A stretch of 64,000 nucleotides of DNA, taken from contig OZ038379.1 in NCBI GenBank assembly GCA_964036045.1, forward strand, positions 55,118,001 to 55,182,000, in the 5' to 3' direction. Below the pieces are notes generated by a model that was given only the letters and a program-made list of their open reading frames with translations, did no database searches and was not told the DNA's origin. Of the stretch, positions 13,270 to 34,904 are shown one piece after another. Source of the DNA: Eutreptiella sp. 'Long Island Sound 2002' (lineage: Eukaryota; Protista; Euglenida). A program made the translations under genes and the position numbers. Position 1 is the stretch's first letter; each line of letters begins with the position of its first letter.

Positions 13270-14418
13270 GGCAGTCCGCCTTCACCCCTATTTCAGGATG
13301 CTTAACTTCAGGGAGGGATACAAAGTCCACAGCCACTGATGCAAAGGGAAAAGAGGACATGGGGAAGGCATCGCATGAGTCAGGATGTGGGCCCCTTTGT
13401 GCCTTGGACTGTGCACATACCACAAAGGCGTCCACAACCTCTTTACCCTATCCCAGTCGTAATCGTCGGACAGATTACGGACATTGAAGTGTCGCTTGAA
13501 AAGTTCGACGGTTTTTGGGGGTACCTGGATGTGCAAAGTAGTGCAATGCTTCTACTACCTAACTCAGGATGCCTACAAGAACCAGTGCCCTACCATTTAC
13601 CCTGATATGGGGGTGTCCCCATGGTGGTTTATGTCACCGGTAGGTTCCATATTCAATGTCTTTCTTGATACCCCAGTCCAGCAGGACTTTCAGGTTAGGG
13701 TCATCTGCGTAGTATGGTTCCTTATCCTCATTCAGGATACTACACGATGGGGGCACATTGACCGATGTGACAGATGTGAGCAGGGTGTGGGGAACATGAG
13801 GAGACTCTCTCATCACATGGGCCATACCATGGAGGTCTTGATCCTCATAGAAATCAGGACCCACGGACTCTTCGGCCTCAGAACCAAAGTGAGGATCACT
13901 AGGATCACTACGCAGGTTGTTCAGGGCACCACACATGTCAATCTTATGGTGATCCGGGCAATCCGGACATGGAGGAGGGTCCGCAGTGACTGGCAGTTCA
14001 GCAAAAGGGTGGTTTTAAGTCACCTTGACCTGTATGTCGGAGGGATAAGCGCATAAGCCCATCTCTGGTCATCTAGCTTGTCTGGGGTGGCCGCTTGCGG
14101 GCTGGCACACTCATAAAGAAAGCCGGGATGGTGGTTGGCCGTGCGCTGATCGCTATAACCGCTGCAGTGTCCATGGCACTTGGCGGTATGGGTGCACGGG
14201 GGTCAAGATTCACTCCCTTTGCAAGGTACAGACATTCCATCAACAAGGGCATCATTTTCGGCCTTGTCTTGGGGTTCCCAGTTCTCCCACCCCTGGAGGT
14301 CGGCATCTGAACCACGGGGGCTGGTGTCATCCGCCAGCCCTGCAGGGTAGGCCCGCACACTCGTCCTTTCCGCGACATGATTGTCCTTACCCAGCTTCTA
14401 GCCAACAACAATGTTGTA
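13270..14418 (-). pseudogene. Ty3/Gypsy pol 3' part: end of RNase H plus integrase
   Basis: YNIVVG*KLGKDNHVAERTSVRAYPAGLADD (RNase H tail); ALHYFAHPGTPKTVELFKRHF and VCAQSK (H2C2 zinc domain); FPFASVAVDFVSLP (integrase core start). Confidence 0.85.
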
Positions 14419-14439
14419 TGGGGTGCAGCCAAGGAAGTA

Positions 14440-14745
14440 TGGCCTAGGAACCCCCCCTTCCTAGGGTTTTTCTACTCCTACACGTTACGAGGGCACCCGA
14501 AGACTTTGAACACAAACACCGCGCCTTCAACGCGCCTACTTTGGGGGACATTGGGTCCCGGGTGGGTGATGTCCAATTTTGGGGTGTTTTTGGAAACCCC
14601 GTTTTGGGCAGGAACCCCCCTGGGAACCCCCCTTCCTAGCCAGGAAGGGGGGTTCCTAGGGGGGTTCCTGGGCAGGAAACCCCCTCCTTCCTATACCCTT
14701 CCTGGGCAGGAACCCCCCTTCCTAGACCCTTCCTATGACCCTTCC
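14440..14745. repeat. Element A left subterminal AGGAAGGGGGTTCC repeats (both orientations)
   Basis: Multiple ggaaccccc / ttcct / aggaagggg units; perfect 15-bp-arm palindrome at 14623-14656. Confidence 0.85.
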
Positions 14746-14929
14746 TGTCATGAGGCAATAGCACACAAATCCGTTCGCTGGGGCTTGAATGGCATTGTGC
14801 CACCGCAGTGATGTTGTCACTGGTCCACGTGCCGCTTGCGTCGATTGACAACGGCCGCACTGCGGCCTTGCCGCACCTCGTACAATTGCAAATCGACACT
14901 CAACGCGTCGGTGTGCACCACGTGCCTCA

Positions 14930-16940
14930 TTCCGAGGCGTGTGATGCGGGGTCGCCGAGTACACCAACCGCGCATCGAGTTTTTGAGATACCGCTTGAAC
15001 GGTTGGTTTCTGTATTATGTCCGAACACTGCGAAAAATGTACAAACTCCCAAAGCGACACGCAAAATATGCGCTGTGAACACATGTCCAATGTACCCAAG
15101 GGGTCACACCCCATTGCAATTTACCCCAACACTCCCCTAAACCGTCACTGGCGGACTCCAATTCCTTGAGTTAGGCCCGTGTTAGCCAATCCCTTTTGCG
15201 CCAGAGCGCGTGCATTCGATGCGTTGATAATAATACATGCTTCATCACTAGGAAAAAGTTAACGCCACCAAAGGCCACGTCGGGTAGGTTGTCCCGCACT
15301 ATGGCCACAACTCGGCCATGTAATGCACTGTCTTCAAAAAACATTTTGCCACCTGTCATATCAAATTTTACGGCCTTGGTTGGCCGGGGAGCCAACCGCT
15401 CAGCATGCGGAACGTTTTTCACCTCATCCAAAAGCTTGTTGTACCTGCGGCTCACTGGTGGCTAAGTGGAAATGTGAAGCTGGGGCTCATTTGGGGCTCA
15501 GTTGTGCATTGCGATGTCTTTGTGCTTGTTTGTTGTGCGTTTTGCATGCTAGGTAATGTGCATTTAATGTTTTTAGAAGTTTTAGATACTCACTTGGTCA
15601 AGGTTCAAGGTGGGGCGTACTTTTTTTGGCGACGGCTCAGTTAACTGAGTGCCTGACTGAGCCGTCGAAAAAAAGAAACCCCCCCGGTCAAATCCTCTCG
15701 GCCTAGGGATTGGTGTCCCTTTGGGGACAGTCCAAAACCCCAACCCACCCCCGAAAGCCACAACTTTTCACATTAAACCCCTTGAAAAACACCACTTAGC
15801 CCCAAATGAGCCGTTTTAGCCCCAGCTTAGCCCCAACGTCACATTTTCAAGTGAGCCGCAGGTACAGTGAAGCTCCAAAACCAAAGCTTTCCCTGTGTCC
15901 TTTGCGGCATTGGCAACGTCGGGTGCACCGTTTTCAATCAAATCTTTCAATGTTTCATTGCGTCGCTGAACAATTGCGTTCGCAATACGACACGAGCCAT
16001 GCTCCACGTCACCAACGCGGTTGCATGGTCCAATTGCCCTCAAAAATGAGCCCCGCCTGCATTGGGCCAATATAGAATTGGCACGTGCCAAGGAATGAAT
16101 GCAATGGCAGCCTGCCCAACATTTTCCCTTTTGATAATTGGCCGAAAGCATGGCTTTGCCATCACTTGTCAAGGCACATACACTGGGTATGCGATTCCCC
16201 AAGTGCCAAAGATCCACAGTGGACAAAACATCCAAAACATCGTGATTAAGGTTTGCCTTAGTGTCAATGGCCCGGAGACAGTGCGTGTCATCCGGTCCGT
16301 CAAGCGCCCACCACGTCGCCGAGCGTCGCACGTCGCCTGCAACTGCTACACCCTCTGACCACACGGTCACGTGGATGTCGCACTTGGTGGCCGAGGTCTG
16401 CCACAGTGGTATGGCACCTGCGCAAATGATAATCAAACGCCGGTCTTTACGAGGGATGTTAAAGGTACCGCACGCCCTACTCAACGTCAGTAGGCTTTGC
16501 ACTACTTCAAGGAGTGGACATACAGGGGCAGCTCGGCGCGATACCACCCCCGATGCAACCTCCAGGGCCGTTGCGACATATGGCTGCAGTTTGCTGCGCC
16601 ACTCCATTAATTCCCTTCGTGTACAATTGCGCTCCAATTTTAACATGTTGTGCGTGGAGAGGCTCATTTGGTGTGCCGTTTGCAACACTTGGATCACTTC
16701 CTCGGAGACATGCTGTTCCTCGTCATCGCGCACCTCGTGGTTGTCGGACCCAATCACTATACCGTTACCGGTTGTGCGCACAACGATGTCGTCATCTCCA
16801 AGCACAGAGCCCTCAACGTCGCCAATGTATTTCCGTCTCTGTCGCCGTGCATCAACCTCCAGATCCCAATACGGGGTCACCCGAACGACACTGCCAAGGA
16901 AATTGGCAACGGCCTTTTGCATTACATTTAAAATGGAAGC
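14930..16940 (-). pseudogene. DDE transposase remnant A, Transib/RAG1-like (CMC supergroup), split by a MITE
   Basis: IICAGAIPLW (first D apparently GAT>GGT), ALTSDGKAM, KCWAGCHC, GDVEHG, KFDMTGGKMF, VTPWVHWTCVHSAYF (HxxxxH), RSVRT*YRNQPFKR (expected E is TAA at 15015-15017). Confidence 0.72.
15444..15862. mobile_element. 419-bp MITE with TA duplication inserted in transposase A
   Basis: 13-bp perfect TIR CCTGCGGCTCACT, further imperfect inverted similarity (aaatgtga, ctggggct, ctcatttggg); TA at 15442-43 and 15863-64. Confidence 0.88.
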
Positions 16941-17209
16941 CTGCCAAGAATTGTGAGGGCAAGATGTGCACAGGAAGTGCCACAAGAACCCCACAAGAAC
17001 CCCCTTCCTGCACATGAAACCCCCCCCTCCTGGCCAGGAACTGTCCCAGGAACCCCACAGGAACCCGTCTCCTTGTACAGGAAGCCCCTTCGTGGACCCT
17101 ACCTGGACCCCTTCCTGCACAGGAACCCCCCCCTTCCAGCACAAGAACCCCCTTCCTGTACCCCTTCCTAGACACTTTCTGCACAGGAACCCCCCCCCCC
17201 TTCCTGTAC
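16941..17209 (-). repeat. Internal block of element A subterminal-type repeats, bounded by GT..AG (putative intron)
   Basis: Minus strand CCAG|GTACAG...TTCTTGGCAG|GCT; interior made of caggaacccc / ccttcct units. Confidence 0.6.
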
Positions 17210-17781
17210 CTGGTGTTTCGGTGTACTGCCCCATCGGTTGCCCGGGTCCTCTCAAACACCGCTGTCACTTCGGGGCATTGCAACCACACATGCCATGCAA
17301 CTGCGTCCATGCTTGGAGAGCTTGGGAATCTCGGTGGTAACCCCAAGGGTGAAGCTATGTGAAGCTCCCCGCTCGTGGCACCACCTGGCGCGCCCTGCGC
17401 ACGATGTGACTACTATCCTACGCGACTGTCGCGCACAAAATAAGATAAGGGTTAGATATGCGTTAGGGTTACGCCAAAAAGGACTAGTTTTTGGATATGG
17501 GTTAAGGTGTGTATTTTTTTTGCGCACCGCGTCGCACAACCCTTGGCGCGTTCGCACATCCATGCATGCATGTGTGCAATCTTGGGAGTGGGCTGGTCAC
17601 AACACACGTGTACTGCAACCACCAGGACGCAATCCCCTCGCAGTGTGCCACCAAGGGTTGTCTCTCCACGTCTCATGCCCACACAGGTTGGCAGAATCCG
17701 AGCATCCCTCAACAGCCACCAGGCCAGAGGGACACTCGGGATCGTTGCGCTCTCATCGCCACCGTGCCTTGCCACTCCTCA

Positions 17782-19056
17782 TCACTTGCTGGGGCTTGGG
17801 CCCTCGCCGTACGTCCGGTTGAGGATGCTCAACGCCCGGTCACATTCCGCAGCTTTCTCCTCCAGCAGAGACTCGGCCTTGACCCTGCCTGCCTGCGCCT
17901 CGCGCGCCGCGTCCTCAGCAGCCTCCAACCGGTCTTCCAGGGCAATCAGGCGTGCCTGCATACTTGCAATGGTTGCCTCGTGCTTGGCAACCTGTTCCCG
18001 TGCTTCACGCTCCTTCTTGGTTGCCTGCTGCGTGGCCCGCTCTGCCCGGGTCTTGCCCCCACTTGCCATCGCCTTCTCAACGGCATCAGGCAACACCTCC
18101 TTCAGCGCCGTGCGCACGACCTCCTGCAACCCAGGTGGCAGCTGCGTGATCACTGTCCCCGTGTCCATTGCCATTGGACTTGCCCGCCCCGGACTGCCTG
18201 GTACGCGCCGCTTGGAGGGGGAGTCGGTGATCGGGGGCCTCTGGGCAGGTCGCTTCACGGATCCCCGCGCTGCCCTGTGTGATTGCTCCGACTTGACCTC
18301 GGCCCCAGCTTGCTGCCACAGTGGTTGTGTACGTTCCTCCGTGCCGGGCTCCTTCTTCACGTCTGAGCGTCCACCCAATTGACCCTGTTCTTGCCGCTTG
18401 TGGTACTTCTCCAGCCACTCGTCAACCGCGTCCTGCACCTCAATGGGGACACCGGCATCCAAATCCGTCAGCCTTGCTAGACTCTTCCGCGTCTTGAAGC
18501 TGCTCTGCTCGCTGTACACCAAGAAAGACCATGTGTTGCTGGCCTTGGCATGGCCAACAAGGCACAAGTACTGCACAACCACGTAAGTCTTGCCATGTCT
18601 TGCATGCCCCTGGGGCAGCTCGGCCAGACTGTCCGTACATGCCACTAGCAACCGCAGTTGCAGGGCAGTGGTTGCCTTCCCCTTCCGCACCGTCAGTGTG
18701 CAGTCGCGATACCAGAACGCGCCCCCGTGCCTGGTCATAGGACTGTGCATGTCTGTGATGTTCAGCGTCGATTGCAACACCCATGTCGGAGGGTCTTGAA
18801 GACTTGGTGCTCGCCCATCCACAGTCCGCGCAGCCTCCGATGGTGCCACTGGCAGTGGGGCTGCCCCCTCCTCCTCATCGACGGACTTCAGGACCAGCCG
18901 CGGGTACACGTCAACATCAGCCTGAAGAGAAGTACGGAAGTGCCAGCGACGAAAGGGGGTAGATAAAGGTAAAGGTAAATTGCTCGGGCGATCTCCGAAC
19001 TCCAGCGTATCAGTGATCCCTACCTGTCCCAAGGCGCAGCACCCTACAGCACACAA
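17782..19056 (-). CDS. Uncharacterised 424-codon accessory protein of element A with C-terminal coiled coil
   Basis: Open frame from the ORF track; globular-looking N half, low-complexity linker, heptad-like tail (EAREQVAKHEATIASMQARLIALEDRLEAAED). True start uncertain; possible splice acceptor at 19044. Confidence 0.55.
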   Translation of the reverse strand: MCAVGCCALGQVGITDTLEFGDRPSNLPLPLSTPFRRWHFRTSLQADVDVYPRLVLKSVDEEEGAAPLPVAPSEAARTVDGRAPSLQDPPTWVLQSTLNITDMHSPMTRHGGAFWYRDCTLTVRKGKATTALQLRLLVACTDSLAELPQGHARHGKTYVVVQYLCLVGHAKASNTWSFLVYSEQSSFKTRKSLARLTDLDAGVPIEVQDAVDEWLEKYHKRQEQGQLGGRSDVKKEPGTEERTQPLWQQAGAEVKSEQSHRAARGSVKRPAQRPPITDSPSKRRVPGSPGRASPMAMDTGTVITQLPPGLQEVVRTALKEVLPDAVEKAMASGGKTRAERATQQATKKEREAREQVAKHEATIASMQARLIALEDRLEAAEDAAREAQAGRVKAESLLEEKAAECDRALSILNRTYGEGPSPSK

Positions 19057-22000
19057 AAGTTATCAAAATAGTTGCAACTCTGGAACCGTGAATTCGCGGG
19101 ACACATAGAGAGCCACTGTATCGTACAGTGCATAGAAGTCCTAGTGCGGAGCGTGGTCTCGCTCACACGAGCATACGACACAGGCGTTCTTGTACCTCGG
19201 TCCTGCCTCTGCCGCCTGGCACCGCAAGACATCACAGTATAGCACCTGCAATGTGTACGGGCTACCCTGTTCCAACGCCCGAGGCGGCACGCTACTGACA
19301 GATCGGTGATCCAGGGCAGCGTGGCACCAGGCACCAGTTGCAGTAGCCATGCCACCAGCCGCTGAACGGAGACTGCCACCTGGGCTCTCGCCCTTACCCC
19401 CACACTGTATCCTGCGAAGGCTACCCCATCTGTCCACACCCTGCAACCTTCCACGAATGGGGCGCTGCGGGGGGCTTGCTGAAACATTTCGTCCCGAGGG
19501 ACATCGCACGCCATCCGCGCCAGAACTACTTTGGCCAGGGCCACCCCATCGGACCGGCTGAGCGGCCACGGCACTTGCGCGGAGAGGTGTACCAGACCAG
19601 TCCACGACACCAGCACCACTTGACTGGCACCTAGCACACTGTCCGCCCAAGTGCTCACCGACGGCACCTCCTGCTCGGGTACAACCCCCACCACCAGCAC
19701 ACCTCCCGGAACCTGCAACCTGGCAAGCAGATCTGTCACGTCACAAGAGAGGACGCGCACCCGTTGTGCGACCTCCTCTACCAGAGCCGTTAGTGCTTGC
19801 CCCATACAGAGGTATAATACCGAACAGTACTGCACATGTGCCCACTGATTGCCCTCACTGAGAGCACAGAAACAGCAGGGAGGTACATCAAAAAATGTAC
19901 GAGGCATGGACGGCAGCAAACGCAAATAGGCCGCCACGCGATGATGTGTTAACGGCACCTCGGAGTCTTCACACACTGCACACGACACGTTGGACAGAAA
20001 ACCCGAACCCGCCAGCTGCACTGAGAGTTCGGAGTCGCACCACTCCGCTACATCACGGAGTTCGGAAAACATGGACACATACGAGATCACTAGTGCCCTA
20101 CCTTGCCACAGTACCGCTGGCACATCCCGCAGCAGACACAGAGCATCGGCGATTGGAAAACCTTGGGTCTGCGGGTTGTCTCGCCCCCAGGTCGCCAGGA
20201 GATGCGATCGCTCTTGCCAGCCGGGCAACAGCCCCGTGGCGTGCGTATCGTGTTGTACTGGGGTCCACAGTTCGTGAACCGCATGCCAGACTCTGTGGGC
20301 CAAAACCAGCTTGGCAATACCGTCAAACCACGGGTTCACCCACACCCAACGCTGGAAACCACATACCAGCGCTGCCGCGGTATCCGCCGTGACCCAGAGA
20401 CGTCCCTTAGCCTCACGACAGATCAACACGCCCAACATCTTGGCAATCCATTCTAGGGCTGTGGACGAGGCCCCAACAGTGAGAATACCTCAGGATATCT
20501 CCTGCTGGATACCCGCCCCATCAGAAATGACCACGCCCATCCTTGCACCAAGAGGGCCACCCTCCGTGGACTGAGGCAAACCGGCGTCGGTGGTCAGGTA
20601 TAGATCAGGAGCCATCCTGAGAGCAGGGAGCAGTTGCGGCAGGGGTAGGTCACGAAACCCACTGGGACTGTCAGTGTGCAGGCGGTACCGTGGCAACAGT
20701 GCCGCAACCCGACTAGCGTCGTCATCACCCAGGGGTAAAGGACACTCGCGTTGCGCCCGAAGGAGCGTACGCGTCTGGCTGTCGCGCCCATCTAGAGCCG
20801 TAAAGTATCCGTACAGGAAAAGAAGGGCTGCCCTGTGGCGTAACGATGGGCACCCCCAGCCAAAGCGCGCTGTGGACACCTGAAGGACTGTAACCGGATC
20901 ATCCTGCGGCAGGCAGAGCAAAGCGCGCACTGCAGGCTGCAGGCGAGGCTGCAAGCGCTCTATCGCCGAGGCGGGGAGAAAGGAACCTCTGCATACATAA
21001 TACAGACTAGACAGAACATAGGCATACAACGCTCTCACGGCCAGTGTAAAATGCAGGCGATGCGCCAATACAAGCGCACGCCGGCGCCTGATACGGCCGT
21101 GCAGTTTAGGGACCAGGTCCGGCAAGTAGGTACCTGGCTATATCGCAATACTCACCACCCCAGGTACTGCCTGAGACGCGGCCGTGCACGCACCCTCCAC
21201 GTTCAGTTCACCCTTGACCCGCTGTATCTCGCCCCCTGGGCCCATACGAAGCACTGTGTACTCTTGCTTCGCAAGGTTGTTAACCGTGCAGTTTTGCTGG
21301 GCTGCATGATGGGCGGCTGTCACTTTGCGGTTGATGGCCAGCGCTGTCCGCTCAACGTAGCGGCGATCATCGCTGAAAACACTCTCACTAGGCAACGCAA
21401 CCAAACCTGCATGCTCGACGACCCACTCCTCAGTCCCACACTGTGACGCGCGTGTCCGGAGCGTACCCAACAGGTTACAGCCCGTGGCTGCAAATACACA
21501 TCCCTGGGAAGAACCTTCACGCGTGGAGACAGGGGGGGCCAGCCCGCGAGTGGTAAAGAGACGTACGTTCTGAAGAGGGTAGAACCTACTGGCCCATTCT
21601 CCAAACGCGCACTGTGTAGACCACATCTGACTAAGCCGGGCCACATTCTTTCTGATGGGCGTGTCAGAGGCTCCGCTCTCGTCAGCATCAACAATGTGGG
21701 CTTAAGCTGTCTGCTGCAGTGCCAGGACGATCGACGCGCGCACGGGGAAACCCATGTGCTGTGGGGATATTTCTTTCCGATAGGAAAAAGTACGTTCATC
21801 GAAATCACACGCCATGTCTGCACGGTACATTGTTTCCCTGTGTACCGTGCTGGCCTCTAAGCAACATGTCCCGCATAGGGGAATGGGCGCAGCAGAGAGA
21901 GGGGGAGGTCATCGACGGACTTGGCATCTGAACATCCTGCCCTCAGAGCCTCGCGCAGCGCTGAAACCGTATTAAATGCCCTGGGATCTCGAGCGTGCAT

Positions 22001-23200
22001 CCGAAGCCACCTCACCTCAGGATCCGCGTCCCATTCCCCAAGCCGTCTCGCCCGAAACAGTGAAGCTAATTTCGTCCGGCGTGGGGAGGGGGGAGGCCGT
22101 GGCCGCCGCCCAGGTAAGGTCAGGCAGGTTCATAAGAACTCCCCTGCTCCCTTGATACACCTCGAGCTGACTGCGCGCCTCCCCAATGATCTCCTGAACG
22201 GATGATGCAACGTGGTCGGGACGAGGCTTCAGCTCTGGCAAGGGTCGGGGGCATGGCGGCTGTAACTTCATGGTTTCGTGGTCAGACGTGTAACACTGGA
22301 TGCCGCTACGATCTGCCTGTTGAGACGCAAGCCACGCATAAACATGTCTGATTGCAGGTCCTGGTGCCACCGGTCCAGAAGCTCCTTCGAGCCTCCCTGA
22401 CGAAGCGTTGCACCCAGTCTCATACGCTCAGCCGTAGCTTGCCGTGTACAGTGCGTAGGCAGAACCGGATCCGCTAATAGCCAATGGCACCGGATCCACA
22501 CATCAGGGTGTACGTCCTGAGCAGACAGCCAAAACCAAAACAAAGCCAGGAGAGGAGTGAGCTTACTCCTTTGATCTGGAGTGTTGGCCGGGTGTTGGTA
22601 TCTCGTAAACGTTGACAGACGCTGTAATCCTGACACACCCTCGAAGTCACACACCACACACACATGAGAGGAAGGACCGGGCACTGCTGAATGACTAATA
22701 AAAGAAAAGTCGGGGCTGACCAATATATAGTCAATCTCTGTCGCACGGTGCTTACCACACTGCCGAGGTGCGGAAGGGGGAGGGTTCCTGAGTGACATGC
22801 ACATGCCACAACCCACACACTGTGCCCAGTTCAAGCCCTCAAACAGCCCTCCCCTTGCATTGCCACTGCCGCTGACCCTTGGCAAGCAGTACTAACCATG
22901 TATTTGCCATATTGCATTGTGAACCCCTCCAACCAAAGGCCCGGCGATTCAAAGGGGACATAGTGTCAACCTGTTGGCATGCACACCAAAAGGCTTGCTC
23001 CTCTGCCACCTTGGTGTTGCGAACGATCGCCCCGGCGGCCATCAACAAGCTCGGGTCTACGGGTCTGGGCCCGTGTGGTGCCATCTCCATCCGGTACAGC
23101 AAAACGTCACTGCTCTCCTCGGTACCCCCGGGCGAATCCTCCAAAGCGGCCGTTCACCACGACCGGAATGCTCCCAAGCGGCGTAACCAACAAGGCGTGG
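19044..23200 (-). pseudogene. LINE ORF2: AP endonuclease, reverse transcriptase, RNase H, zinc knuckle
   Basis: EIDYILVSP..PSSHVCV (APE C-terminus); DESGASDTP, GSSQG, VFSDD (RT); TTDAG, TALEW, TADT (RNase H D/E/D); CCFCALSEGNQWAHVQYC. ORFs 21138-21644, 20490-21125 and 19044-20438 share one frame separated by single stops. Confidence 0.85.
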
Positions 23201-24955
23201 TGTTCCGATCTCGGCCAGGGCAGCCACTCGCTCTCGTGTGCATGCCCCGCCAGTGGGCAGTCCTCCGGCTTGGGGGTTTTGTCAGCGGGAATCACATGTG
23301 GTGCGAGCGCTGCCTCGTAATGCCCGGTGTAAAGCGTCGTCCCATCCGATGGAATCAAACAGGTCACCATGTGCTGCAGGGTAGGGACACGACTCGGATC
23401 AGCGGCCTCGGCACTCCCCGGATCGGATGCTGTGCTGCTACTGCTTGTCGCACTTGCTGCACTCGATCCCCGTGTGATTGCGGCAAAAGACTTGGACACC
23501 ACACCCAATGCACTTCTCACTTGTCGGCTTCTGGCGGCATCCGTGGACTCCACAACTGACAGCGGCCTTGTGCGCCCAGAACGGAGGCGTGATGGCGTGG
23601 GTGGTGGCGTAGGACACGGTGTGCGTCGACAGCCCACAGAACCCAATAATACGGCGGGACCCCGGTTCCGCAGCCAATGGTAGGCCGCCTCCTTCATGCA
23701 CCACCGTCGAGCAGATCACCCACAGGGAACCCCTTCTCATTGGCATGCGGTGGATGATCCAAGGCCGAGGGAAGGCACAGGGAGACATGGCGACGAACTG
23801 TGCGCAAACCTCATCATCATGGGATATCCATCGACATTGCCCGGAACACGGAGAGGGCGATGCCATTCATAGGAAGTGACGCTGCTAGGAAATTTCGGTG
23901 CGGCAGTTGGCAAACGTGGGTGATGGACTCGATGTACCCTTGCGTCATTACGTGCAGCGTCTTGCCCAAGATCGCCTCCAACTTGGCCTTCACCCGCGTC
24001 ACGGCCGACAGGTGCGGCAGGTCCCAGAGCTTGATGTTCCCCTCCCCATCCGGATACTTGGACATGTCCTCCAGCTTCCCCCACACCATCTTGCGGTCCG
24101 GCGGGTCCTTAGCTCGGCCAGCAACTAGGCGGTTGTGGTTGAGGATCCGGGCCCAACGCTCCTCGGCGATCGCCACTGCCTCCTTCTACGCCTCCTCCAC
24201 CTCATACTCCGCAAAAAAACTCCGGATGAACAAGTGGTGCAGGCTGGCAAGCTGACTGGGGTCGCTGTTCACGGCAGTGGGGCAGCCACTCGGCAGCTCC
24301 AATAGGGGTTCCTCGTGCGCGACAAACAGCGGCGTGGAGGTGACGGGGAGGGCAAGTAGCCCGCTGGCCGTATACGCACTCGGCACGGTGAGCCCGGGGC
24401 CGTCGCCGTCCCATTCCCACGCTGAGCGACTGGAGAGCGAGTAGATGGGAAGGGTCTCCTCAACGGACTGCCGCGGATCGAAGAGAAACAGCTTCCGCTT
24501 GCTGCCTCCTTGTGCCACCCCTCCTTGGCGAAAGTGGTCGGCTTGGGCTTCGTGGAAGTGAAGCGGAGGGTGGTGGGCGGCTCGGCATCGACAAGATGGG
24601 CAGCCATGTAGTGGCTGTGGATCCGGGTGTGGTCGCTGGGCAGGCGGGCGGACAGGGACTCCAGCAAGGAGGAGTAGTCCGCTCCGCTGGGCCGCACGTG
24701 GAATGTGGTAATCTCGGGGTTGCGGCGCACCGTCTCTGCAATGAGGTCTAAGAGGGCACATGGGTCCCTGTCGCGGAGGATGGACTTGGTGATGCGCACC
24801 CGGCCGATGTTCGTGCCCGGCGGCCAAGTCACGGCGGAGTTGGTTGCGATGGTCGTGTCGTGGAACGTCTGCCCCTCCGGAAGGGAGCAACCACGTCTAC
24901 CGGCCGGGCCTGTGGCGGCCGCCATCCAATCCGAAGCATAGGGACAGGCAGACAT
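23200..24955 (-). pseudogene. Probable LINE ORF1 region, fragmented
   Basis: Protein-like fragments 24269-24955, 23817-24176 and Cys/His cluster KCIGCGVQVFCRNHTGIECSKC, positioned 5' of the endonuclease. Confidence 0.5.
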
Positions 24956-24989
24956 TGCGAAAACCGGGCTGCCTTTGAGGGGCAGGAAG

Positions 24990-25140
24990 GGCCATAGGAA
25001 AGGGGGTTCCTAGCCAGGAAGGGGGGGGTTCCTGGCTAGGAAGGGGTCTAGGAAGGGTCTAGGAAGGGGGTTCCTACTAGGATGGGGTCCAGGAAGGGTG
25101 CAGGAAGGCTCTAGGAAGGGGTTCCTAGGGGGGTTCTTGC
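24990..25140. repeat. Element A right subterminal AGGAAGGGGGTTCC repeats
   Basis: Tandem aggaagggg(tcta/ttcct) units just inside the right TIR. Confidence 0.85.
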
Positions 25141-25307
25141 CCGAAAAAAGTTGACTCCCTTGGTCCGACACCGGGGTCGTGATAGTTCCTAAACACTTAT
25201 TTTGACCCCCAAAACACCCCCCATAAGTGTGGTCCGTTTCTTTAGCGGTGCACTACCATGTCATTTGGCGAGGGGTTCCTAGGCCACCCTTCCTTGGCTG
25301 GACCCCA

Positions 25308-25985
25308 TACCGGGAAAGGAAGTCATTGCAACAGCTGCAACGACCTAGGTGTCGAGCCATAGTACAGACATTCTCCTTGTACCATGACTCGGTGGACTTG
25401 TAGTCTGTCAAAACAGTGACTTTACGCCCTCATGTCCAACTGTTGAACTTGAAGAGGCAAGACACCAGTGCGTAGGTCTCGTTTTACCCCACAGACAATG
25501 TCCTTTGCCCGGTAAACCCCAAGGCTTTGCCCTGGGGACCATATCGGATCTGGACTTCAGGTTTTGTTGATTATGAGGCTCAAGCAGCCCAGCTACCATC
25601 ACGCAAGAGCTGCTCCAACACACCCCCTATGCCAAAATCCGAGGCACCAACGTGAATCGCATATTGACCAGTGTCATTGGGGATATACAATGCACACTTC
25701 TCACACAGTGCCTCCTTGATTTTGGCGAAAATCTGCTCCATGATCTCAGTCCATTCAATGGAGCTGCGGTCGGTGCAGACCTTGCACTTGCCTCCCTCAG
25801 GCGCTCTCTCATACTTCCCTCTGAGGCTGGCCATCAGGGCTGCAGCCAGAAGAGCATACTGAGGTATGTAAATGGAATACCAATGAAATACTTCCAAAAA
25901 TCCCTTCATCTCCTTGGGGGTACGAGTCATGGCTTTAGCCCAGGCACGAACTGCAACTACTTTCTCGCGGGCAGAAGATCTTGGA
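25308..25985 (-). pseudogene. Ty3/Gypsy pol 5' part: RT connection and RNase H
   Basis: EKVVAV..PKEMKGFL..WYSIYIPQYA..IEWT..FAKIKEAL..YAIHVGASDFGIGGVLEQ..ETYALVSCLFKF..KVTVLTDYKS..DFLSRY, with in-frame stops. Confidence 0.9.
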
Positions 25986-28451
25986 GACCCTCGTAAAGCA
26001 GTACAAGGTGAAGGTGATTCTCCAGCCGGGGAAGCAGCCGGAAGTGGACCGAGAGGAGGGCATGCATTCGCCCCGGTCATGCTCTCCCCGCTCCTAGTCA
26101 AGGTGAGCGGGGTCATGGAGGTGCCGATTTGCAATGAAACCAATCTAGATGATGCACAATCGCCTTGGAGCATTGTGCAATAGCATTAGCACGCGATGGG
26201 TGGCCTGAAGCACCGCTTTTGAGGGTAAATGGCCATAATCAGCCCCCAAGAGCAGCTTTTTTGGCACCTTTCTTTAGTGTGTTTGATGCTATAGATTGCC
26301 TAGGCACCCTTGCGGTGATTTATACAGATGAATGGGAACCTGTGCGAGGCATTACCCCACACCCAACACCATTCAATCCCCTATTGGCACCAACACAGTG
26401 CGTGCCCGTGCCAGGGTAGGGTTAGCAAGGGTCACTTGTGGGTCCAAAAGAGGAGCAAAAAGAGTTTTCTCAAAGATGTTCTAGGACCACTTGGTGTGCC
26501 CAAACAAATTGATTCACGTTGTTTTCATTGATTCCTAGCCATGACAGCTAGCCCATGCAAGTCCCCCAAAAGCCGTAAAAGGGCCAAAAACGGCCACATT
26601 TTGGGTACGGGTGGGACAAGGGGGAGGCGTGTCTCTCCAGCAAGTGCACTGAGCAACGAAGGATTTTGGGAGGCGGGGGAGTATTGGGGACTATGGGGCA
26701 GGGGCTCTCAAGCGAGCCAAGCGAGCAAGCGGTGTGTTGGGGGGTATCATTGCCGCACTATGTAGGAGCTAGGCTCCTTTACATGTGTCCTTCAAGAGGT
26801 CTTTATCCGTCTTGGTTGGCTAGGGGTCACCTGCAAGTCAAAAAGTGGTCTAAAGTTATTTTTTCCGAATGTCCTCCAAGATCGCCCCAAGAAGTTGCTT
26901 TAGGTTGTCGTTTTTCACCGATATTAGCCCATGTATGTTCCCCTACCCTTGGTACACGCTAGAAGACCCAATCTCGTTCTAACCTACACGGCGGGAGAGG
27001 GCTAGAACGGAAAAAAGAGTTGGGTACCCGGGGGGGGGGGGGGGGTTTGAGGCTTGTAACCCAGACCCCCCTACCCGTCCTCGGGGGCCCATGGTTTTTT
27101 TTCACAATGTCACCGTTTTCACCTAATCTTGGAGTCTCAAAAATTTTCGTTCTAGCAACGTTCCAGCGACGTTCTAGCAAGCGCCGCTAGAGCGTCGCTA
27201 GAACAATGTATATGAGTGCTCCGCCACTCCTCAAAGAGAAGCTGCCCCGGCTACAATGGCCAGCCGTGGCCCATCGCAGGGTCGGAATGCTCAACCCGAC
27301 TCACGGAGTGCCATGTTCCCCCGGCCCAGCCCCCGGTTAGCCCTATTAGCCCCCCAGCCCCCCCAATAGGTTAGTTGGAAGGTCACTTGGCGGACGCGCC
27401 GGGTCACTTGGTGGTGGGTTGGCCCGATTAGCTCGATTAGCCTGATTAGCCGGCCCCCCTTTCGCGAGTCGCGACACGCTCGTTACCTCTCCTACATGGT
27501 GGGGGGTTGCCGGGGCGCATCCTTGCTCCCGGCACCCCCCTTCTCACCCCCCATGTCCCCTTCCTTCTCCCCCCCTCTTGTCACCCCCCATCTCACCCCC
27601 CTTGTCAGCCCCCTCCCCCTTGTCGTCACCCTCGTCCCCCTCGTCATCCCCGTCATCCGCGTCGTCCCCATCGTCTCCCACAAGGCCTCCCAGAGCTGGG
27701 CCTCCGCCTCCTCCCGGATGCGGAACAGGAGCTCCCCCGGCACCCGGAAGGGGCCCCCCTCTTTCTCTTGCTTCCTTTTCTTCCCCTTCTCCCCGCCCTC
27801 CCCATTGGACCCCTGCGACAGCACCAACCAGTCCCCTAGGTCCAACTCCTCATCCCAATCCCCCAAAACCGTCACTTGGACACTGACGGTCCCCCCATTG
27901 CCCCCCTTCGCTCAAGGGACATACCGGGTGTCCCCCACACCCGGCACATTACCATAGGGGTCCCGGCCCCCATTCTCCAAGGGGGGGCTTGGTGTTTGGT
28001 GGAGGGCTTGCCCTTGCCCTTGCCCTTGGCTTGGGCAAGGCCTTAGGCTTGGTCTGGGCTTCGGGGGGGAGGGGCTCTTCCTCGCTACTCTCGAAGTGGC
28101 AGGGCTTCTTCTTGGGGCCCTTGGGGGGCGTTTGGGTTTGGGGGTTTTGGCGGGGGGTGTCCTCTCACCGCTAGTGCCGCTGGTGTTGTTGTTGCTGCTG
28201 CTGCCGCTGCGGGTCTCTCCTCCCCCCTCCCCCACCCTCAACCAACCCTTGCGCTGCGGGTCCATGCCCCCCGTACTCCTTCCCGCCTCCCACCTACCCA
28301 GCCCGTACAACACCGAGAGGGCCAAGTTGGGGTCCTTCCCCATCATCCAGCCCAACCCGGTGTCCCCCACGAGGTGCGTCCGGCCTGCGGCATCGCGCCA
28401 CTCTACGTGCACCGCGCGGGCGTTGGCTCCACACGTCTGCATGCTCATAAC

Positions 28452-28606
28452 CTGAGAAGAGAAACAAGAGGCAAGGGTGTTCTAGCGGCGTTCTAGGCAA
28501 CTGCTCAAGCGGCGTTCTAGCGACCTTCTAGTGGCGGCGGCGGCGGCGGTTGCTAGATCAACGCTAGAATGGTTCCTAGATCAACGCTAGGACGCAGTCA
28601 ACATAC
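28452..28606 (-). other. Predicted GT-AG intron filled with TTCTAGCG repeats
   Basis: ACG|GTATGT...TTGTTTCTCTTCTCAG|GTT; splicing joins ORF 28598-28915 to ORF 27912-28448 in frame. Confidence 0.75.
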
Positions 28607-29921
28607 CGTGCCTTGCCGGTCAAGGGCGCGGGAGATGGCCCCTAGGTGCCTTGGTGAAGGCGTCCCGGGGGTTGGGGGGCTGCGGCTGCGGGGGTCCCCC
28701 AATTGCGGGGGTTGCGGGGACCTTGGGCTTGGGCTTGGGGCGGGAGGCGATGCCGTGCACCAATCCGGCATACGCCCCCCGGTTGGCCGGCGATGGGTCA
28801 AACCCCCCCATATCCATGATCGCCGACCACGTTGGCGTCTAGGTGCACATCCTTCCCGCAAGCTCCAACCCCCCCCAAACCATGCGCCTGCTACAAGATG
28901 GCGATGAATCGCCACTGGCTCGCCCCCCCCCCTTTCTCACCTCGGGGACGGAGGTGGCGTTGGGCCAAGTCAAACATCTTCACCCCCTTTTCCGAGGGGG
29001 GGCTCGCGTCCCTCCACTTCCGCCCAGGCAACTTTGGTTGCCACCACCACTCCCCTGGGACCCCCCCCACCCGCAGGGGCTTGTCCCGGTGGACGACCCC
29101 CTCCGAGTACACCCATACCCACCTGGCCTGTCCCAAAATCCTTTAATGCACCCGCTACCTCAAAAAACGGAGAGTCCAAACTGGACTCTCCGGGGGGACG
29201 AGGAGGGGGTGGTCGAGGTTTCGATGGTGGGGGCCAGCCAGGACGGCCGGGTCCCATGGCAGGTGCTGGATGGCCCCCCCCTCCTTCGTCCCCCAAAAAA
29301 CCCTCAACCATTGCCCTGCCCCCACCGCCTTCTCCTCCACCACCTTCTCCTCCACCTCGTCCTTTACCGTCTCCTCCACTATCTCCCCCACCTCCGCCTC
29401 CACCACCTCATCCTCCAGCTGCTCCTTCACCTTTGTCTCCGCCGCCACGATCCCCTCATTCCGCGTGACGCTCCTCTACACATGGAGGATGTTCTCCTCC
29501 CTCTCCTTCACCTTCTCCCTCGCCTTCCCGAGGCAGACGACGGCCCAAGCCTCCTGCTCCACATCCCCCTCGGCGCGCAACGCGTCCACCTTGGCCTCCT
29601 AGGCCACCACCTTCTCTTGGCCTTCGCCCCCTTCTGCGCCGTGAGGGAAGAGGAGAGACTTCGCAGCTCCCCCGGCAGCTCCTCCAGCTGCTTGTCCCCT
29701 TCCTCCGTGGCCGCCCTGGCCGACTTCTTGGCGGCCAACGGGTGAGGGGGTGGCAACGGTGGATGTTGGGCTTGGGGTTGGGGCTTGGGCTTGGGCTTGG
29801 GCTTGGCGAGGGGCGGTGTCTTGGGCTTGGCCTCGACTTCGGCCTTGGTCTTGGCCTCGGCCTCGGCCTTGGCGTTGGCCTCGGCCTGCTAGCGCATCAC
29901 CTCGGCCAGCAAGTCCGCGGT

Positions 29922-30077
29922 CTGACGTTGCTAATACAAAAATCGCAGCAGCGTTCTAGCGGCGTTCTGGGCAACTGTTCTAGCGGCGTTCTAGCGACGT
30001 TCTAGCGACCCATCGTGCCGCCTAGATCAACACTAGAACGCTTCCCTAGATCATCGCTAGAACGGACGACAAAATAC
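29922..30077 (-). other. Predicted GT-AG intron filled with TTCTAGCG repeats
   Basis: CAG|GTATTT...CAACGTCAG|ACC; splicing puts the ATG-30119 exon in frame with ORF 29508-29756. Confidence 0.7.
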
Positions 30078-30199
30078 CTGTTTCCAAATCTCCTCGATCG
30101 AATTTTGCGGGGCGGACATGTTGCTGATGCCGAAGAGTCCGTTCGACGGAAGCCTGCATGTGCCCCTGGCTCCTCCTCACCTCCATGGCACCCCTGCCC

Positions 30200-32170
30200 A
30201 AGCATGGCACTTGCGACCAGGGCCCCCCGTGCACAACCCACAACACGTCGACGTTTGCAAACAACCATGTCATACATTGTGCTTGCACACCGGCCTCCCT
30301 GTTGATGGCCGACCACTTACGACCTTCAACCTCGTTCTCCCCCTCCACCTTACAGCCCTCCCCCCCACGATTGCTATGCTCGTTAGGACCATGTTTCAGA
30401 AAGCGGTTGATGCTTTCTGAAATGTCACCCGAGAACATGGCCAAACCAAATGGCCAAATGTTGTGCAACATGGCATCTACATCCTGTTCCAGGCTCTGTA
30501 GATACCATGATGCTGTACCAACAGTAGGGTGCCGCCGGGAATCCCTTGCCACGGCGGCACAGTTCAATGGGTTAGGGGCTTGATATGTACAATAGAGGGC
30601 GTGCAGCAGGTCCCACATGTTCGCGATGGCCTTGTACGTAGCCGTGCTTTGCCTAATGCCGAGGCACCCGGCAATATCCAGCCATGCCTCAAAAAAATTG
30701 GCCGTTTCTTCCCCGTCCGGGGAAGCTGACCCGTAAACTTTGCAACCTACACGCCTCTCCGATAGGAGAACTTGCAGGTCTTGATGGAGCCAAGGGGTGA
30801 CCGCCCTAGCCTCCCGGTCGACAAACTCTCCCAACAAGAGGCCCATGGCCATTGTCAAGTGCAAAATGCACAGGACGACCCAGACACGTGGTAATTGCAA
30901 AATCCGCTGCGTACTACAGCCAGCGGCTTGCAAAGAAGGCGTCCCAAGGAGCAAGGCCGTGTAGTGGGCCTCCTCACCCTCCATGGTCCGCGGGATAGCA
31001 GTACCCTCCCAAGTCTCCTTTTGGGCATTCCATATCCCCTCATTGACCATGGAGCCCACTTGGGGGCTTGTGGACACTCCGATCACCCTTCGTGTCCACA
31101 GTTGATCCCCCCGAGGATCACCTTTGCCTCCACCTTGGAGGCCCCCCATTGGACGAGCCCCGTGTCGATGACTCTTGAAGCAGCTAAACACAAGACATGG
31201 GGGTTAGTTCATTGGGTTCTAGTCTAGTCTAGCCTAGCTTCTAGTGAGCGGTGTCCGAGGCTAAGTACATCAAAACTAGAACGAGTGACGGGCACTAGGT
31301 GAGAGGAGTACCTCCCAATTGCTCTTCCACAACGTCCCAAGGGTGTCCATGGCCTTGTTATCGCAATTGGCCACGCTCAACACCCAAAGGCCCGTGGGGG
31401 AGCGGGCCAAGCGGTCGAAGTTGGCCAAGGAGATGAGTTGGGTCCAATTTCCCCTGGCCACGGGGTAGGCATCCCCCCGGACGATGAACGTCACTGGGAA
31501 GTTGCAACTGATTGACGGCACCAAGCCTGGCCAGGAGAGGATATATTTGACCCATGAGGCGAAGGGCCATGAGATCCCGGTGGCCTTGGGCAACACCGTG
31601 GCAATGGGGGGATCCAATTCCATGGGGGCGAACAACTCCTTCCAACGGGCTTGGAAGTCCCGCTTAGTGCAAATTGGATGGGAGTAGGGGGCACCGGGGA
31701 CGGTGCGGTGGTACTCATAGTTATAGAGCATGTAGAGCTCCGAGAGGGTCCTTCACGAGGACTTGGGTGCCTTCATGTTGAGCACAAGTTCACACATGGC
31801 GGTAGGGGGGGGAAGGGAGGCGGCGTATGCCTCAACGGCGGCCTTGCATGCCTCACCCGTGGTTTGGGTAGAAGTGGCGTTGTTCACATAGTGGATGGCG
31901 TTGTTGAATTGCCGCCGTGCTCGGGGGCATGATAGCGCCCACGTGGCTAGGTAATGGCCCACCCGCTCATCCTTGAGGTTCAAAGCCCCACTCAAGTTCC
32001 GTAGTGCCTTAGACAAGAGGGAAGTATCCTTCCCGGTTTCGGAGGGAGCAAGGGGGAAAGGGGTGTTTCATGGCAAAGAAATGTGTAATATCTAAGTGTG
32101 AGGGAAGGGACCATGGCACAATGCACCATGGGCAATAGCAAGCATGCACGGCGGAACCATGAAGGACCTG
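30200..32170 (-). pseudogene. DDE transposase remnant B, Transib/RAG1-like (CMC supergroup)
   Basis: TFIVRGDAYP (D about 31472), ILGGDQ (D about 31106, frameshifted), VVLCILHLTMAMG, SWYLQSLEQDV (position of HxxxxH, His codons not retained), FGLAMFSGDISESINRFLKH (E about 30416). No clear CxxC. Confidence 0.72.
31184..31311 (-). other. Predicted GT-AG intron in transposase B containing CTAG repeats
   Basis: GAG|GTACTC...TCTTGTGTTTAG|CTG; interior ctagaagctaggctagactagactag; the downstream exon needs a 1-nt indel to stay in frame. Confidence 0.55.
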
Positions 32171-34904
32171 GCACATCTTGGTAGACATTATATCGTTCTA
32201 GTATGGATCTAATCTAGGCTAGAACATCTAGTCTAGATGTTTTAGGCTAGAACAAGATTGTGTCTTCTAGCGTGTACCAAGGGTAGCACCTTCAAAAGGC
32301 CCCCAAATGGCTAAAATGAGTGTTGAAAGTGATCTTGCATAAGTGCCACCGTCATTTGCTATTTTTGATTGCGATGTACTGCTTTAGGCACACTTACGAT
32401 GATTAACCATTATGAATGGGAATGTTTGCAAGCTATTCTTATAACACCAAAACCTACCGTGCACCACGCACAAGTTAGGGTGCTTGGAGTGCTCAAACAT
32501 GTATTTCACAGTTGTTTTGACCTGCAATTTCCCAAAAAGCCATGTCGGAATCCAAAATGGGGCAAAAAGGGTTCAAAAATGCATGCCCTTTTTGGGCATA
32601 ATTCGTGGTCTATCCGATATTCCCTCACCCACCAGCTTGGTCCTGATAGGTCAGTCTTGATTCGGTGTGGGGTCCCCGAGCTGGTGGAACAAGTAAGATT
32701 TCATTACCCACTTTAGGGTCTCGGGTGCAGCTTCCCGTTTTAGCCAGCAAGCAAGCAAGTGCGCAACCAGCATGCACGAAATTGGCAAAATTTAGAAAAC
32801 CATCGCGGCGGTTGGGATCCGGCCAAAGTTTTGGTGGTTGATGCCTATGAGTATGAGGTGAAGTACAATCGCACAAAGCGAGGTGGGCGGCTTGTTCGAA
32901 TTCCATACCCCCCCCCCCCCCGGGCTCTCCCCCCCTCCCCCTCGAGACCCCCCCAATTTTTCCAACCTGTCTTTCTGCAATTTGAGGTTTTGGGGCAAGG
33001 ATAGGCGCCAAAGGAGCCAAATTTTCTTTGCCCTTACTGAGGGGTTTTTCCCCCCATGTGTCTATACTCAAAATACTCTAAATTTTCTAGAGAAGTGAAA
33101 AATGTTTGAAAAATCAAAAACAATTGAACCCTGACCTGACCTCCAGGTCGGACCTTGGCTGATGGGAGCCTGGGCTAATGGGCAAATGTTTTCTGAAATT
33201 TTTTTGGCCCCATTTTTGTATGTTCAAAATGATCAACGCGTCACGGGGATCATTTTGAGGTATGTATGTTGGTGATCCGCTGACCCCCCCCTCTAGGGGG
33301 AGTCCGCCGGCTAACCGCGTAACCCACCTACTCCCCCCTCACCCCCCCCCCCGCCCCCTCCAGACCCGCAAATTTTTTGCACCCCGTTGGGGTCTCGAAT
33401 TTGAAACCCCCCCCCCCCCCTTGACACAAATTTCGAGCAAGAAACTCAACGGCAGCTGGAAACCACCGTTGTGGGTGACAAACCAAATTTCAAAATATGT
33501 CAGAAATGGCCAAACAAAAACATTTTTGCGGGGGAAATTCGGGTGCCTAGGATGTAGGTGGAGAGGGGCATTAGCATTTGGAACTGGCCGAAATGATGAA
33601 CAAACACCTTGGGGCATTGTGTCGTAGCAGTTGCCCGCAATTAGTGTAGATGCCTCTTGGGGGTAATAAGCTTGCAAATTGAGCCTCGAAAAGTGGATTT
33701 TTGCATAGCTTTTGGAGCTTGACCTTCCTTCGTTGCGTTTGGCTGCCATGTACTGCCTTGGACACTTTTGTGGTGATACACAATGATGAATGGGAACATT
33801 TGCAAGCTATTTCCACACCTCAAACACCCTTTCGAGGACCATTGGCACCGAGGAGTGGTGCATAACACGCACATGCAAGGGTAGGGTTCGCTGGGGCTCA
33901 CCTATGGATCAAAAAGGTATCCAAAATGATTTTGCCAACTTGTCCCGAGACCATTTGGGGTGCTGCTACAATTGGTTTTTAAGCCGTTTGGAGCTTTTTT
34001 TTTTAAACCCATATTAGCCCGTGCAACGTCCCAATACGCTTTTAAAAGGGCCCAAATGGGCCAAAATCAGCTTTGAACGTGATCCTGGAGAAGTGCCATC
34101 TTCCTTTGCTGCATATATTGTGTTGGGCACCTTGATGGTGATGAATACTGTTGAATGGGAATGTTTGCCAGCACCAACACCCTTCAATGCCCCATTGACA
34201 CCCATGAGTGGTGCGCTGCATACTTTCTAGGGTAGTGCTAGTGGAGTCGTGTGTGGGTCCAAAAATGGTTTAAGATGATGTTTTCCAAAGTTGTTTTTGC
34301 ACCAGGAGGGGTGCTGAAACTATTGGTTCAAGGCTATTTTGAGCCATGTGCAATCCATGTTACCCTATGCAAATTCCAAAAAAAAAAAAGCCTTGAACAT
34401 GACCATATTGGGACCAAAGAGGGACCAAAATAGGGACAGAAACGCATTTTTTCAAGTGCTCCAATAATTGGTGTTAAACCATTTTTAGCTATCTTTGAAC
34501 CATGTTTTCCCTTTTTGAGCCCATTTCGCTGGTGTACTTAATGTTCCCTCACCCACCAACTCAGTCCCGGTATTCAATTTTGATTAGGGTCATAGGATAT
34601 GCCGCAGTGGGATCACCCGATACTTGTCCCACCATAGTGGCCATGTTCAATGGCCGCCCTATTTTTCTGTCATTCCCCATGAATCAAATGTGCCATGCTT
34701 TGCTGCTGCTTTCTGCTACTCTCCGTGTCCATCACATTTCTCTCCCTTTGCAGTGCTGTGTTGCTTATTGTTGTATGCTCTTGCATCGTTTGTTTCTGTC
34801 CCATTGTTTCAGCAATTGAAGTGCCATGTGCACTATTATCGACGAATTTGCAAAGCGGTTTTGTCAAAAATTGATACACATGAATCATCTAGTATTCTTG
34901 CTTG

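Follow-up and report, generated by a model that had tools for sequence, protein, structure and literature searches.

Transposons of the EnSpm/Mirage/Chapaev/Transib (CMCT) clade generate target site duplications of 2-5 bp, and have in most cases the termini 5′-CA..TG-3′ (Kojima 2025, PMC12730594). Among them, PlavakaA combines a 2-bp duplication with TGT..ACA ends, and ESTA duplicates TA (Kojima, PMC12730594). Relatives of Transib with 3-bp and TA duplications and with non-C termini have been reported (Ilin and Mannervik, bioRxiv 10.64898/2026.08.26.747230), and a RAG-like transposon of Aureococcus carries an upstream RAG2-like gene (PMC9435367). We analysed here a stretch of 64,000 nucleotides from Eutreptiella sp. 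'Long Island Sound 2002' (contig OZ038379.1, positions 55,118,001 to 55,182,000 of the forward strand), called the window below, in which a preliminary description had placed a 10.9-kb composite transposon with terminal inverted repeats (TIRs) at positions 14419-25307. This segment is most probably one decayed copy (the window copy) of a high-copy cut-and-paste transposon of about 6.9 kb, brought to 10.9 kb by nesting. Its transposase is placed in the CMCT clade by a D..D..C(2)C..H(4)H..E signature and by its fold; taken as a whole, we hold this reading to be highly probable.

Ends of the element and target site duplication

A repeat finder run on the window returned two arms of 39 nt, 14416-14454 and 25272-25310, that are 92% complementary. 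By visual inspection, 3 positions are mismatched between the 36-nt arms 14419-14454 and 25272-25307 (33/36), and TA is present on both sides, at 14417-14418 and 25308-25309. In the genome (2.28 Gb), a 33-nt end gave 211 matches at up to 2 mismatches and its reversed control none, which excludes a chance origin of the repeats. The 36-bp TIRs flanked by TA, as first described, are therefore confirmed by repeat finding, by eye and by the genomic matches. With the first 182 bases as a query, at least 281 candidate matches were found in the genome, and the 40 that were scored were 94-100% identical.

Ends were paired when they lay on the same contig. Of 15 stretches so collected, one was incomplete and was set aside, giving 14 other two-ended copies and, with the window copy, 15 pairs. 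The 2-bp direct repeat was perfect in 13 of the 15 pairs, where chance predicts 1/16 per pair, and in the two imperfect pairs it differed by one base. Eight different dinucleotides were represented among the perfect pairs (TA 3, CA 3, TG 2, and CC, CG, AA, AG and GG once each). The left flanks of 30 copies (loci L001-L030) were no more fixed, with CA in 9, TG in 3 and TA in 3. Since the perfect pairs vary and the left flanks are not fixed, the duplicated target is 2 bp long and can have any sequence; TA at the window copy is incidental. Thus the TA duplication initially proposed keeps its length, and loses its sequence. CA and TG together account for 12 of the 30 dinucleotides adjoining the TGGGG end, for about 4 expected, which suggests a weak preference for CA/TG targets. 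The ends themselves read TGGGG..CCCCA in all 30 copies. A Tc1/mariner origin was considered and rejected: the likeness is limited to the TA flanks of the window copy, TA being found in just 3 of the 15 pairs among 8 different dinucleotides, and fold, size, gene content and TA-specificity all differ.

The insertion site in a Gypsy element

The segment had been delimited with the help of a Gypsy reading frame that it appeared to split. The 120 bases on the left and the 120 bases on the right of the insertion each align to 11 uninterrupted Gypsy paralogues, at 81-84% identity, and in these 11 paralogues the two alignments overlap by exactly 2 bp, a single TA. The paralogues read ..RWHEFLSRYNIVVVYKPGKDNDVADGMSRWAYPAG.. 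(also ..FLSRYNIVVVYKPGKDNDVAD..) in one frame over the site. When the window flanks are translated separately, the left one gives ..NDFLSR and the right one YNIVVG*KLGKDNHVA..RAYPAG. In paralogue L050, whose open frame has 799 codons, the site lies near residue 451, where a Pfam RT_RNaseH match ends; RVT_1 is found upstream and Integrase_H2C2 downstream, which is the Gypsy domain order. The host of the insertion is a Ty3/Gypsy retroelement, and the transposon sits in the RNase H region of its pol gene. Uninterrupted paralogues aligned to both flanks, in which the frame runs through the site, hence provide natural empty sites at the exact boundaries first proposed.

Canonical length and nested insertions

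The other two-ended copies are 3140 to 7005 bp long, and nine fall within 6.7-7.0 kb. Aligned to these, the window copy has two extra stretches, 15440-15866 and 18957-22763, corresponding to a miniature inverted-repeat transposable element (MITE) and to a 3.8-kb repeat resembling a long interspersed nuclear element (LINE). As none of the 14 other two-ended copies holds either stretch, we conclude that both are later nested insertions, whose arrival inside the transposon accounts for the 10.9 kb of the window copy. The Gypsy element came first; the DNA transposon inserted into it, and was itself entered later by the MITE and by the LINE-like element. What had been described as a composite transposon is consequently an ordinary nest. 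Its ends do enclose a transposase and an accessory open reading frame (ORF) of 424 codons, as described, together with a LINE-like stretch that is confined to 18957-22763.

The features of the nest are listed here by window position; the gene orientation is that of the window minus strand.

14417..14418, no strand: left copy of the target site duplication (TA); single TA in 11 uninterrupted Gypsy paralogues
14419..14454, plus strand: TIR, starts TGGGGTGCAGCC (3′ end in gene orientation); 211 genomic matches, control 0
14600..14750, no strand: subterminal motif array (AGGAAGGG / GGGGTTCC and complements); 8-mer recurrence
14820..16925, minus strand: RAG1-fold transposase gene with Asp-Asp-Glu (DDE) catalytic residues (ORF C), split by the MITE; tblastn, fold and motifs
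15440..15866, no strand: nested MITE, 427 bp, non-canonical; perfect 16-nt TIR TGTACCTGCGGCTCAC and 2-bp duplication GT
16940..17210, no strand: internal motif array between ORF B and ORF C; 8-mer recurrence
17785..18966, minus strand: ORF B, conserved N-terminal domain and coiled-coil tail; uninterrupted 424-codon frame 17782-19056
18957..22763, minus strand: nested LINE-like repeat, displacing the canonical internal motif array of about 240 bp between ORF A and ORF B
22842..24955, minus strand: ORF A, PhyH-like Fe(II)/2-oxoglutarate dioxygenase-like gene, also including a stretch rich in Cys and His, and a C-terminal module that is conserved; frameshifted
24980..25150, no strand: subterminal motif array, 5′ end in gene orientation; 8-mer recurrence
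25272..25307, minus strand: TIR, ends ..GGCTGGACCCCA; pairs with the left arm
25308..25309, no strand: right copy of the target site duplication (TA); single TA in 11 uninterrupted Gypsy paralogues

The TIR of the MITE begins with TGTACC, and eight other copies of the transposon are uninterrupted at this point, with a single GT. TGT..ACA ends with a 2-bp duplication are the pattern published for PlavakaA, and by analogy the MITE may have been mobilised by another family of the CMCT clade.

The LINE-like repeat is found elsewhere in the genome, with at least 1096 candidates at first look. Its copies share a common end at 18957-18965 and are truncated to a variable extent from the other side: most of the copies listed start at query positions 54-65, and they stop at varied points, from 1337 to 2963. 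From this pattern of a fixed end and variable truncation we infer that 18957-22763 is a non-LTR (long terminal repeat) retrotransposon on the minus strand. On its own strand, the insert terminates in short TTTACC-type repeats (window 18957-19000). It has no target duplication of its own, because it replaced the internal motif array, about 240 bp of the canonical element, and it misses about 140 bp, at about 21862, known from other copies. It is probably 5′-truncated, since the residues that can be read first look like the end of an AP (apurinic/apyrimidinic) endonuclease domain. Visual reading alone suggested an FSDD motif and an RNase H-like stretch, and a word-based homologue search with a 481-residue piece returned unannotated near relatives only. 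The whole LINE announced earlier is thus reduced to a probably truncated insert that ends at 22763, short of 24955, the segment 22768-25307 being canonical transposon, found in every copy, and encoding the dioxygenase-like gene.

The transposase has a predicted fold of the RAG1 type

A word search retrieved 33 relatives of the transposase, down to 35% identity. An exhaustive search of public data (E up to 0.001) gave 930 clusters at 50% identity, none of them with a precomputed Pfam domain. An AlphaFold model built from 14 sequences (pLDDT, the predicted local distance difference test, 72) was compared with the PDB using Foldseek, and the top 49 matches were all RAG1, the amphioxus RAG-like protein BbRAGL or HzTransib of Helicoverpa, with a best E of 1.2e-10. 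The Z scores of VIA-align were 18.0 for RAG1, 16.1 for BbRAGL, 14.4 for HzTransib and 12.7 for the P element, before a drop to 7.4. The alignment with RAG1 covered 428 residues, positions 68-548 of the model lying on RAG1 459-1008. The likeness to RAG1 and Transib implied at first is therefore borne out by the predicted fold (Z 14-18).

Residues are numbered below along frame L038:5100-6776. Across 21 members, which are 29-43% identical, D170, D183, D255, H309 and E494 are invariant or nearly so. A CWxC pair follows D255 by 14 residues in 19 of the 21, HWxxxH is found in every member spanning that stretch, and E494 comes 20 residues after the second His. The DDE triad is formed by D170, D255 and E494; in the model, D170 is part of a strand, while D255 comes directly after one. 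These motifs agree with those by which the CMCT clade is defined (PMC12730594).

Gene content and state of the copies

The canonical element has three long co-oriented frames, A, B and C. They are best preserved at L033:4526-6751 on the minus strand for A (742 codons), L038:2766-4238 for B (491 codons) and L038:4779-6776 for C (666 codons). Four arrays of one short motif (CCCTTCCT / GGAACCCC and complements) are found, one just within either end of the element and one in each of the A-B and B-C intervals; in L038 they lie, in gene orientation, at 170-320, 2515-2750, 4520-4765 and 6550-6690. The array 8-mers occur 8-19 times per copy, for 0.1 expected by chance, and the motif is also part of the terminal repeat itself. 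Along the element, the first two arrays point one way and the last two the other way (+, +, -, -). ORF B is thus enclosed by a pair of internal arrays in opposite orientation, as if it were an element inside another.

ORF A is a probable Fe(II)/2-oxoglutarate dioxygenase of the PhyH type. This assignment comes from sequence comparisons: ORF A matches the PhyH profile PF05721 (E 6.5e-4), a fragment from the relative L059 matches the corresponding part of this profile independently (E 7e-3), and a motif HRD..(about 65 residues)..H is found in 12 of 14 copies and in L059, the window copy reading HRN. The nearest Atlas feature clusters of ORF A are PhyH, 2OG-Fe(II) oxygenases and HalD halogenases (0.92-0.94). 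A feature search of the Atlas with the whole of ORF A gave no usable match, and a word-based homologue search gave near-identical proteins only. A RAG2-like partner, such as that of the Aureococcus element, found no support in ORF A, which looks like a dioxygenase.

The element L059 (L059:5432-12088) is a 6.7-kb relative with the same gene order, a transposase 37% identical, motif arrays of its own (TGGAACCCCC type), and TIRs that start with TGGAAGCGCT, with TGG at both ends. ORF A is present in all near-full copies, and its conservation in L059 extends through about 660 residues (29-42% identity), in a position upstream of the transposase and in the same orientation. From conservation along such a length beside a 37%-identical transposase, we read ORF A as a component of the element and not as a chance capture. 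For ORF B, Pfam run on the long frames of the window and of intact copies found nothing. Weak similarity links its N-terminal domain to L059 (E 7e-4) and also to the C-terminal module of ORF A. In L059, the C-terminal module of A and a B-like domain share a single open frame. This hints that A and B of the canonical element could be exons of one gene.

The 15 two-ended copies are about 5-9% apart in pairwise comparisons. In each of the nine full-length copies inspected, at least one of the three frames is disrupted, and the genome contains at least 6 full-length transposase frames free of stops, one of which is at G000:C2:128626653-128628329. Dead itself, the window copy keeps only B open (424 codons); its C is interrupted by the MITE and contains stops in the final third, and its A has a frameshift. 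Shorter copies in the genome, and joints in public DNA contigs, correspond to internal deletion derivatives. These data show a cut-and-paste element that has defined ends, integrates with a 2-bp stagger, gives rise to such deletion derivatives and bears a RAG1-type DDE core.

Relationship to known transposons and alternative readings

The family has a DDE triad, the Cys pair and His pair motifs, and a 2-bp duplication within the 2-5 bp of the CMCT clade. It appears to be an undescribed, though well-delimited, variant within the RAG1/Transib/CACTA group, with conserved oxygenase and coiled-coil partners. With Transib, RAG1 and RAG-like proteins (PDB 6PQN, 4WWX, 6B40) it shares the fold over RAG1 459-1008 (Z 14-18) and the DDE triad; as in these proteins, two Cys follow the second D and two His precede the E. 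It differs from them by undetected sequence similarity, a 2-bp instead of a 5-bp duplication and TGGGG instead of CAC ends; ends of the heptamer/nonamer type are not seen and no RAG2-like gene was recognised, the partner genes being dioxygenase-like and coiled-coil. The preliminary description had presented the TGGGG..CCCCA ends and the 2-bp duplication as unlike the CAC ends and 5-bp duplication of Transib. The difference is real, and it is no anomaly, since the CMCT clade as a whole spans duplications of 2-5 bp and has some lineages with ends of the TG..CA type. CACTA elements likewise have subterminal repeat arrays and more than one gene (PMC12730594), and PlavakaA likewise has a 2-bp duplication and TG-type ends. 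Unlike the usual members of the clade, this family ends in TG..CA and not in CA..TG, and Pfam Transposase_21 is unmatched. Nozomi-related Transib (bioRxiv 10.64898/2026.08.26.747230) also have a RAG1/Transib-type transposase without any conserved-domain match, non-canonical duplications (3 bp, TA) and non-C termini, but are insect single-gene elements that group with Transib by sequence. Fungal TET/JBP transposons (PMC12730594) are also cut-and-paste elements, some of the same clade, with a gene for an Fe(II)/2-oxoglutarate dioxygenase; here the enzyme is of the PhyH type, the host is not a fungus, and the gene is kept across transposases that are 37% identical.

A number of results weigh against reading the segment as a nested CMCT-clade element with a dioxygenase gene. 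The CA..TG termini of most of the clade are replaced by TGGGG..CCCCA in 30 of 30 copies. No Pfam family was matched by ORF C, nor any RAG1 model by the 21 members at E up to 5, and a PDB sequence search, profiles included, gave chance matches only for the transposase. In an ESM Atlas fold search, RAG1_RNase_H and Transposase_21 (CACTA) clusters scored alike (TM, template modelling score, 0.57-0.66), so that fold cannot separate Transib from CACTA-like lineages. The sole two-ended copy of L059 has unmatched flanks, CT and GC. ORF A reaches E 6.5e-4 against PhyH (PF05721), its 20.5 bits being below the Pfam cut-off of 22, and its fold model (pLDDT 31) is unusable. Lastly, six pieces of the LINE-like insert gave no relevant Pfam match at E up to 10.

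Several alternatives have to be weighed against this reading. That the segment is a genuine 10.9-kb composite transposon, duplicating TA and carrying a whole LINE as cargo, agrees with the TA flanks of the window copy and with a LINE-like stretch that is co-oriented with the transposon genes and has no duplication of its own. We nevertheless consider it extremely improbable, and reject the LINE as cargo, given that the stretch is missing from all 14 other two-ended copies, is an independent repeat with its own boundaries and at least 1096 candidates, and displaced the 240-bp array as a target deletion would, while TA flanks just 3 of the 15 pairs. Quite unlikely, in our view, is the idea that ORF A and ORF B are captured fragments of host genes with no role in the element. 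Gene capture by DNA transposons does occur and neither frame has a strong family assignment, but ORF A is found in all near-full copies and is placed and oriented alike in L059, at 37% transposase identity, where the N-terminal domain of ORF B is also weakly conserved.

As to classification, the family could belong to the Transib superfamily proper and have undergone drift in its ends and in the length of its duplication, as in Nozomi-related Transib. The best matches among solved structures are RAG1, RAGL and Transib, and language-model features favour RAG1 families and not Transposase_21. In the alignment of the transposase, H(4)H is followed by 19 residues and then E, which is also the spacing of H937, H942 and E962 in RAG1. 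Lability of duplication and TIR within Transib is also documented (bioRxiv 10.64898/2026.08.26.747230). We judge this reading unlikely all the same. Of what defines Transib strictly, only the RAG1/Transib fold was found, though CACTA-type models fit equally; the duplication is 2 bp and not 5, the ends start with TGGGGTGCAGCC and are not of the CAC type, the CACxxTG heptamer is absent from the ends read, and there is no sequence match in Pfam or PDB, the Pfam RAG1 model matching 0 of 21 members even at E 5. CACTA-type clusters moreover fit the transposase model as well as RAG1 clusters. Alternatively, the family may belong to a named non-Transib lineage of the clade (Lanisha, Plavaka, Mirage or ESTA) and be merely unannotated here, a possibility that we find doubtful although it deserves to be kept in mind. 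In its favour are the 2-bp duplications and TGT..ACA ends of PlavakaA (PMC12730594), the motifs shared by all named lineages, including Lanisha, a proposed moss superfamily similar to EnSpm (PMC12730594), and the streptophyte origin of one of the two nearest Atlas feature clusters. However, a PhyH-type dioxygenase with a coiled-coil gene appears in the descriptions of none of the four. Only tentatively, and as a rather unlikely proposal, can one see here an undescribed and widespread RAG1-fold lineage standing beside Transib/RAG and not inside the CACTA-like groups, with the PhyH-type dioxygenase and coiled-coil protein as obligate partners. In such a lineage, the dioxygenase might modify DNA or chromatin, as a means of escaping silencing or of marking the ends, and the coiled-coil protein might bind the motif arrays.

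Proposed mechanism and implications

On the favoured reading of a CMCT-clade element, the transposon entered a Gypsy-type pol gene, in its RNase H region, and duplicated 2 bp. By homology, strand transfer would be staggered by 2 bp. Solved relatives suggest a DDE-catalysed excision through hairpin intermediates, as in RAG and Transib, with a zinc-stabilised insertion domain. The motif arrays are putative binding sites for the transposase or for ORF B, by analogy with CACTA. More speculatively, the dioxygenase might act on DNA or chromatin marks and counter host silencing, as could be proposed from the fungal TET/JBP transposons.

Besides correcting the annotation of the window to an ordinary nest of a Gypsy element, a transposon, a MITE and a LINE-like element, these results describe what is most likely a large branch, so far unannotated, of the group of transposases from which RAG1 arose; its ends and its 2-bp duplication are firm. 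It would add to the evidence that duplication length and ends vary widely around a conserved RAG1-like core. Retention of a PhyH-type gene with the transposase suggests that oxygenase-carrying DNA transposons extend outside fungi, and to another enzyme family; oxygenases on transposons could act on DNA or chromatin marks. Natural transposase frames free of stops make the mechanism testable with natural sequences.

The family and its relatives in public data

The element was found in none of the public RNA runs, and the five runs that hold it (X1-X5) behave as DNA contigs; GT..AG ends are missing at the joints in these contigs, and the joints resemble internal deletion derivatives. In runs X1-X5, two organisms with different labels (A and B) contain 36-41% of the sampled words of the element, and the family is therefore common to at least two labelled taxa or strains. 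In two database proteins, P0013 and P0029 (alignment A3), the N-terminal two-thirds of the dioxygenase-like protein are fused to the middle of the transposase, with joints near DIPDDEV.. and WWAL.GPDD; these are A-C fusions made by internal deletion.

The window contains a second TIR element at 26946-32283, with ends TACCCTTGGTACACGC.. and a 381-codon frame with a GDISESINRFLKH motif. It belongs to a different family, as tblastn of the RAG1-fold transposase gave no match in this interval. Another protein, the relative P0021 (563 residues, 39% identical), is found as the same sequence on short contigs (loci L060-L063) from four independent samples, 2 from JGI and 2 from SRA. The element that encodes it may be transcribed, or recently active, in another organism.

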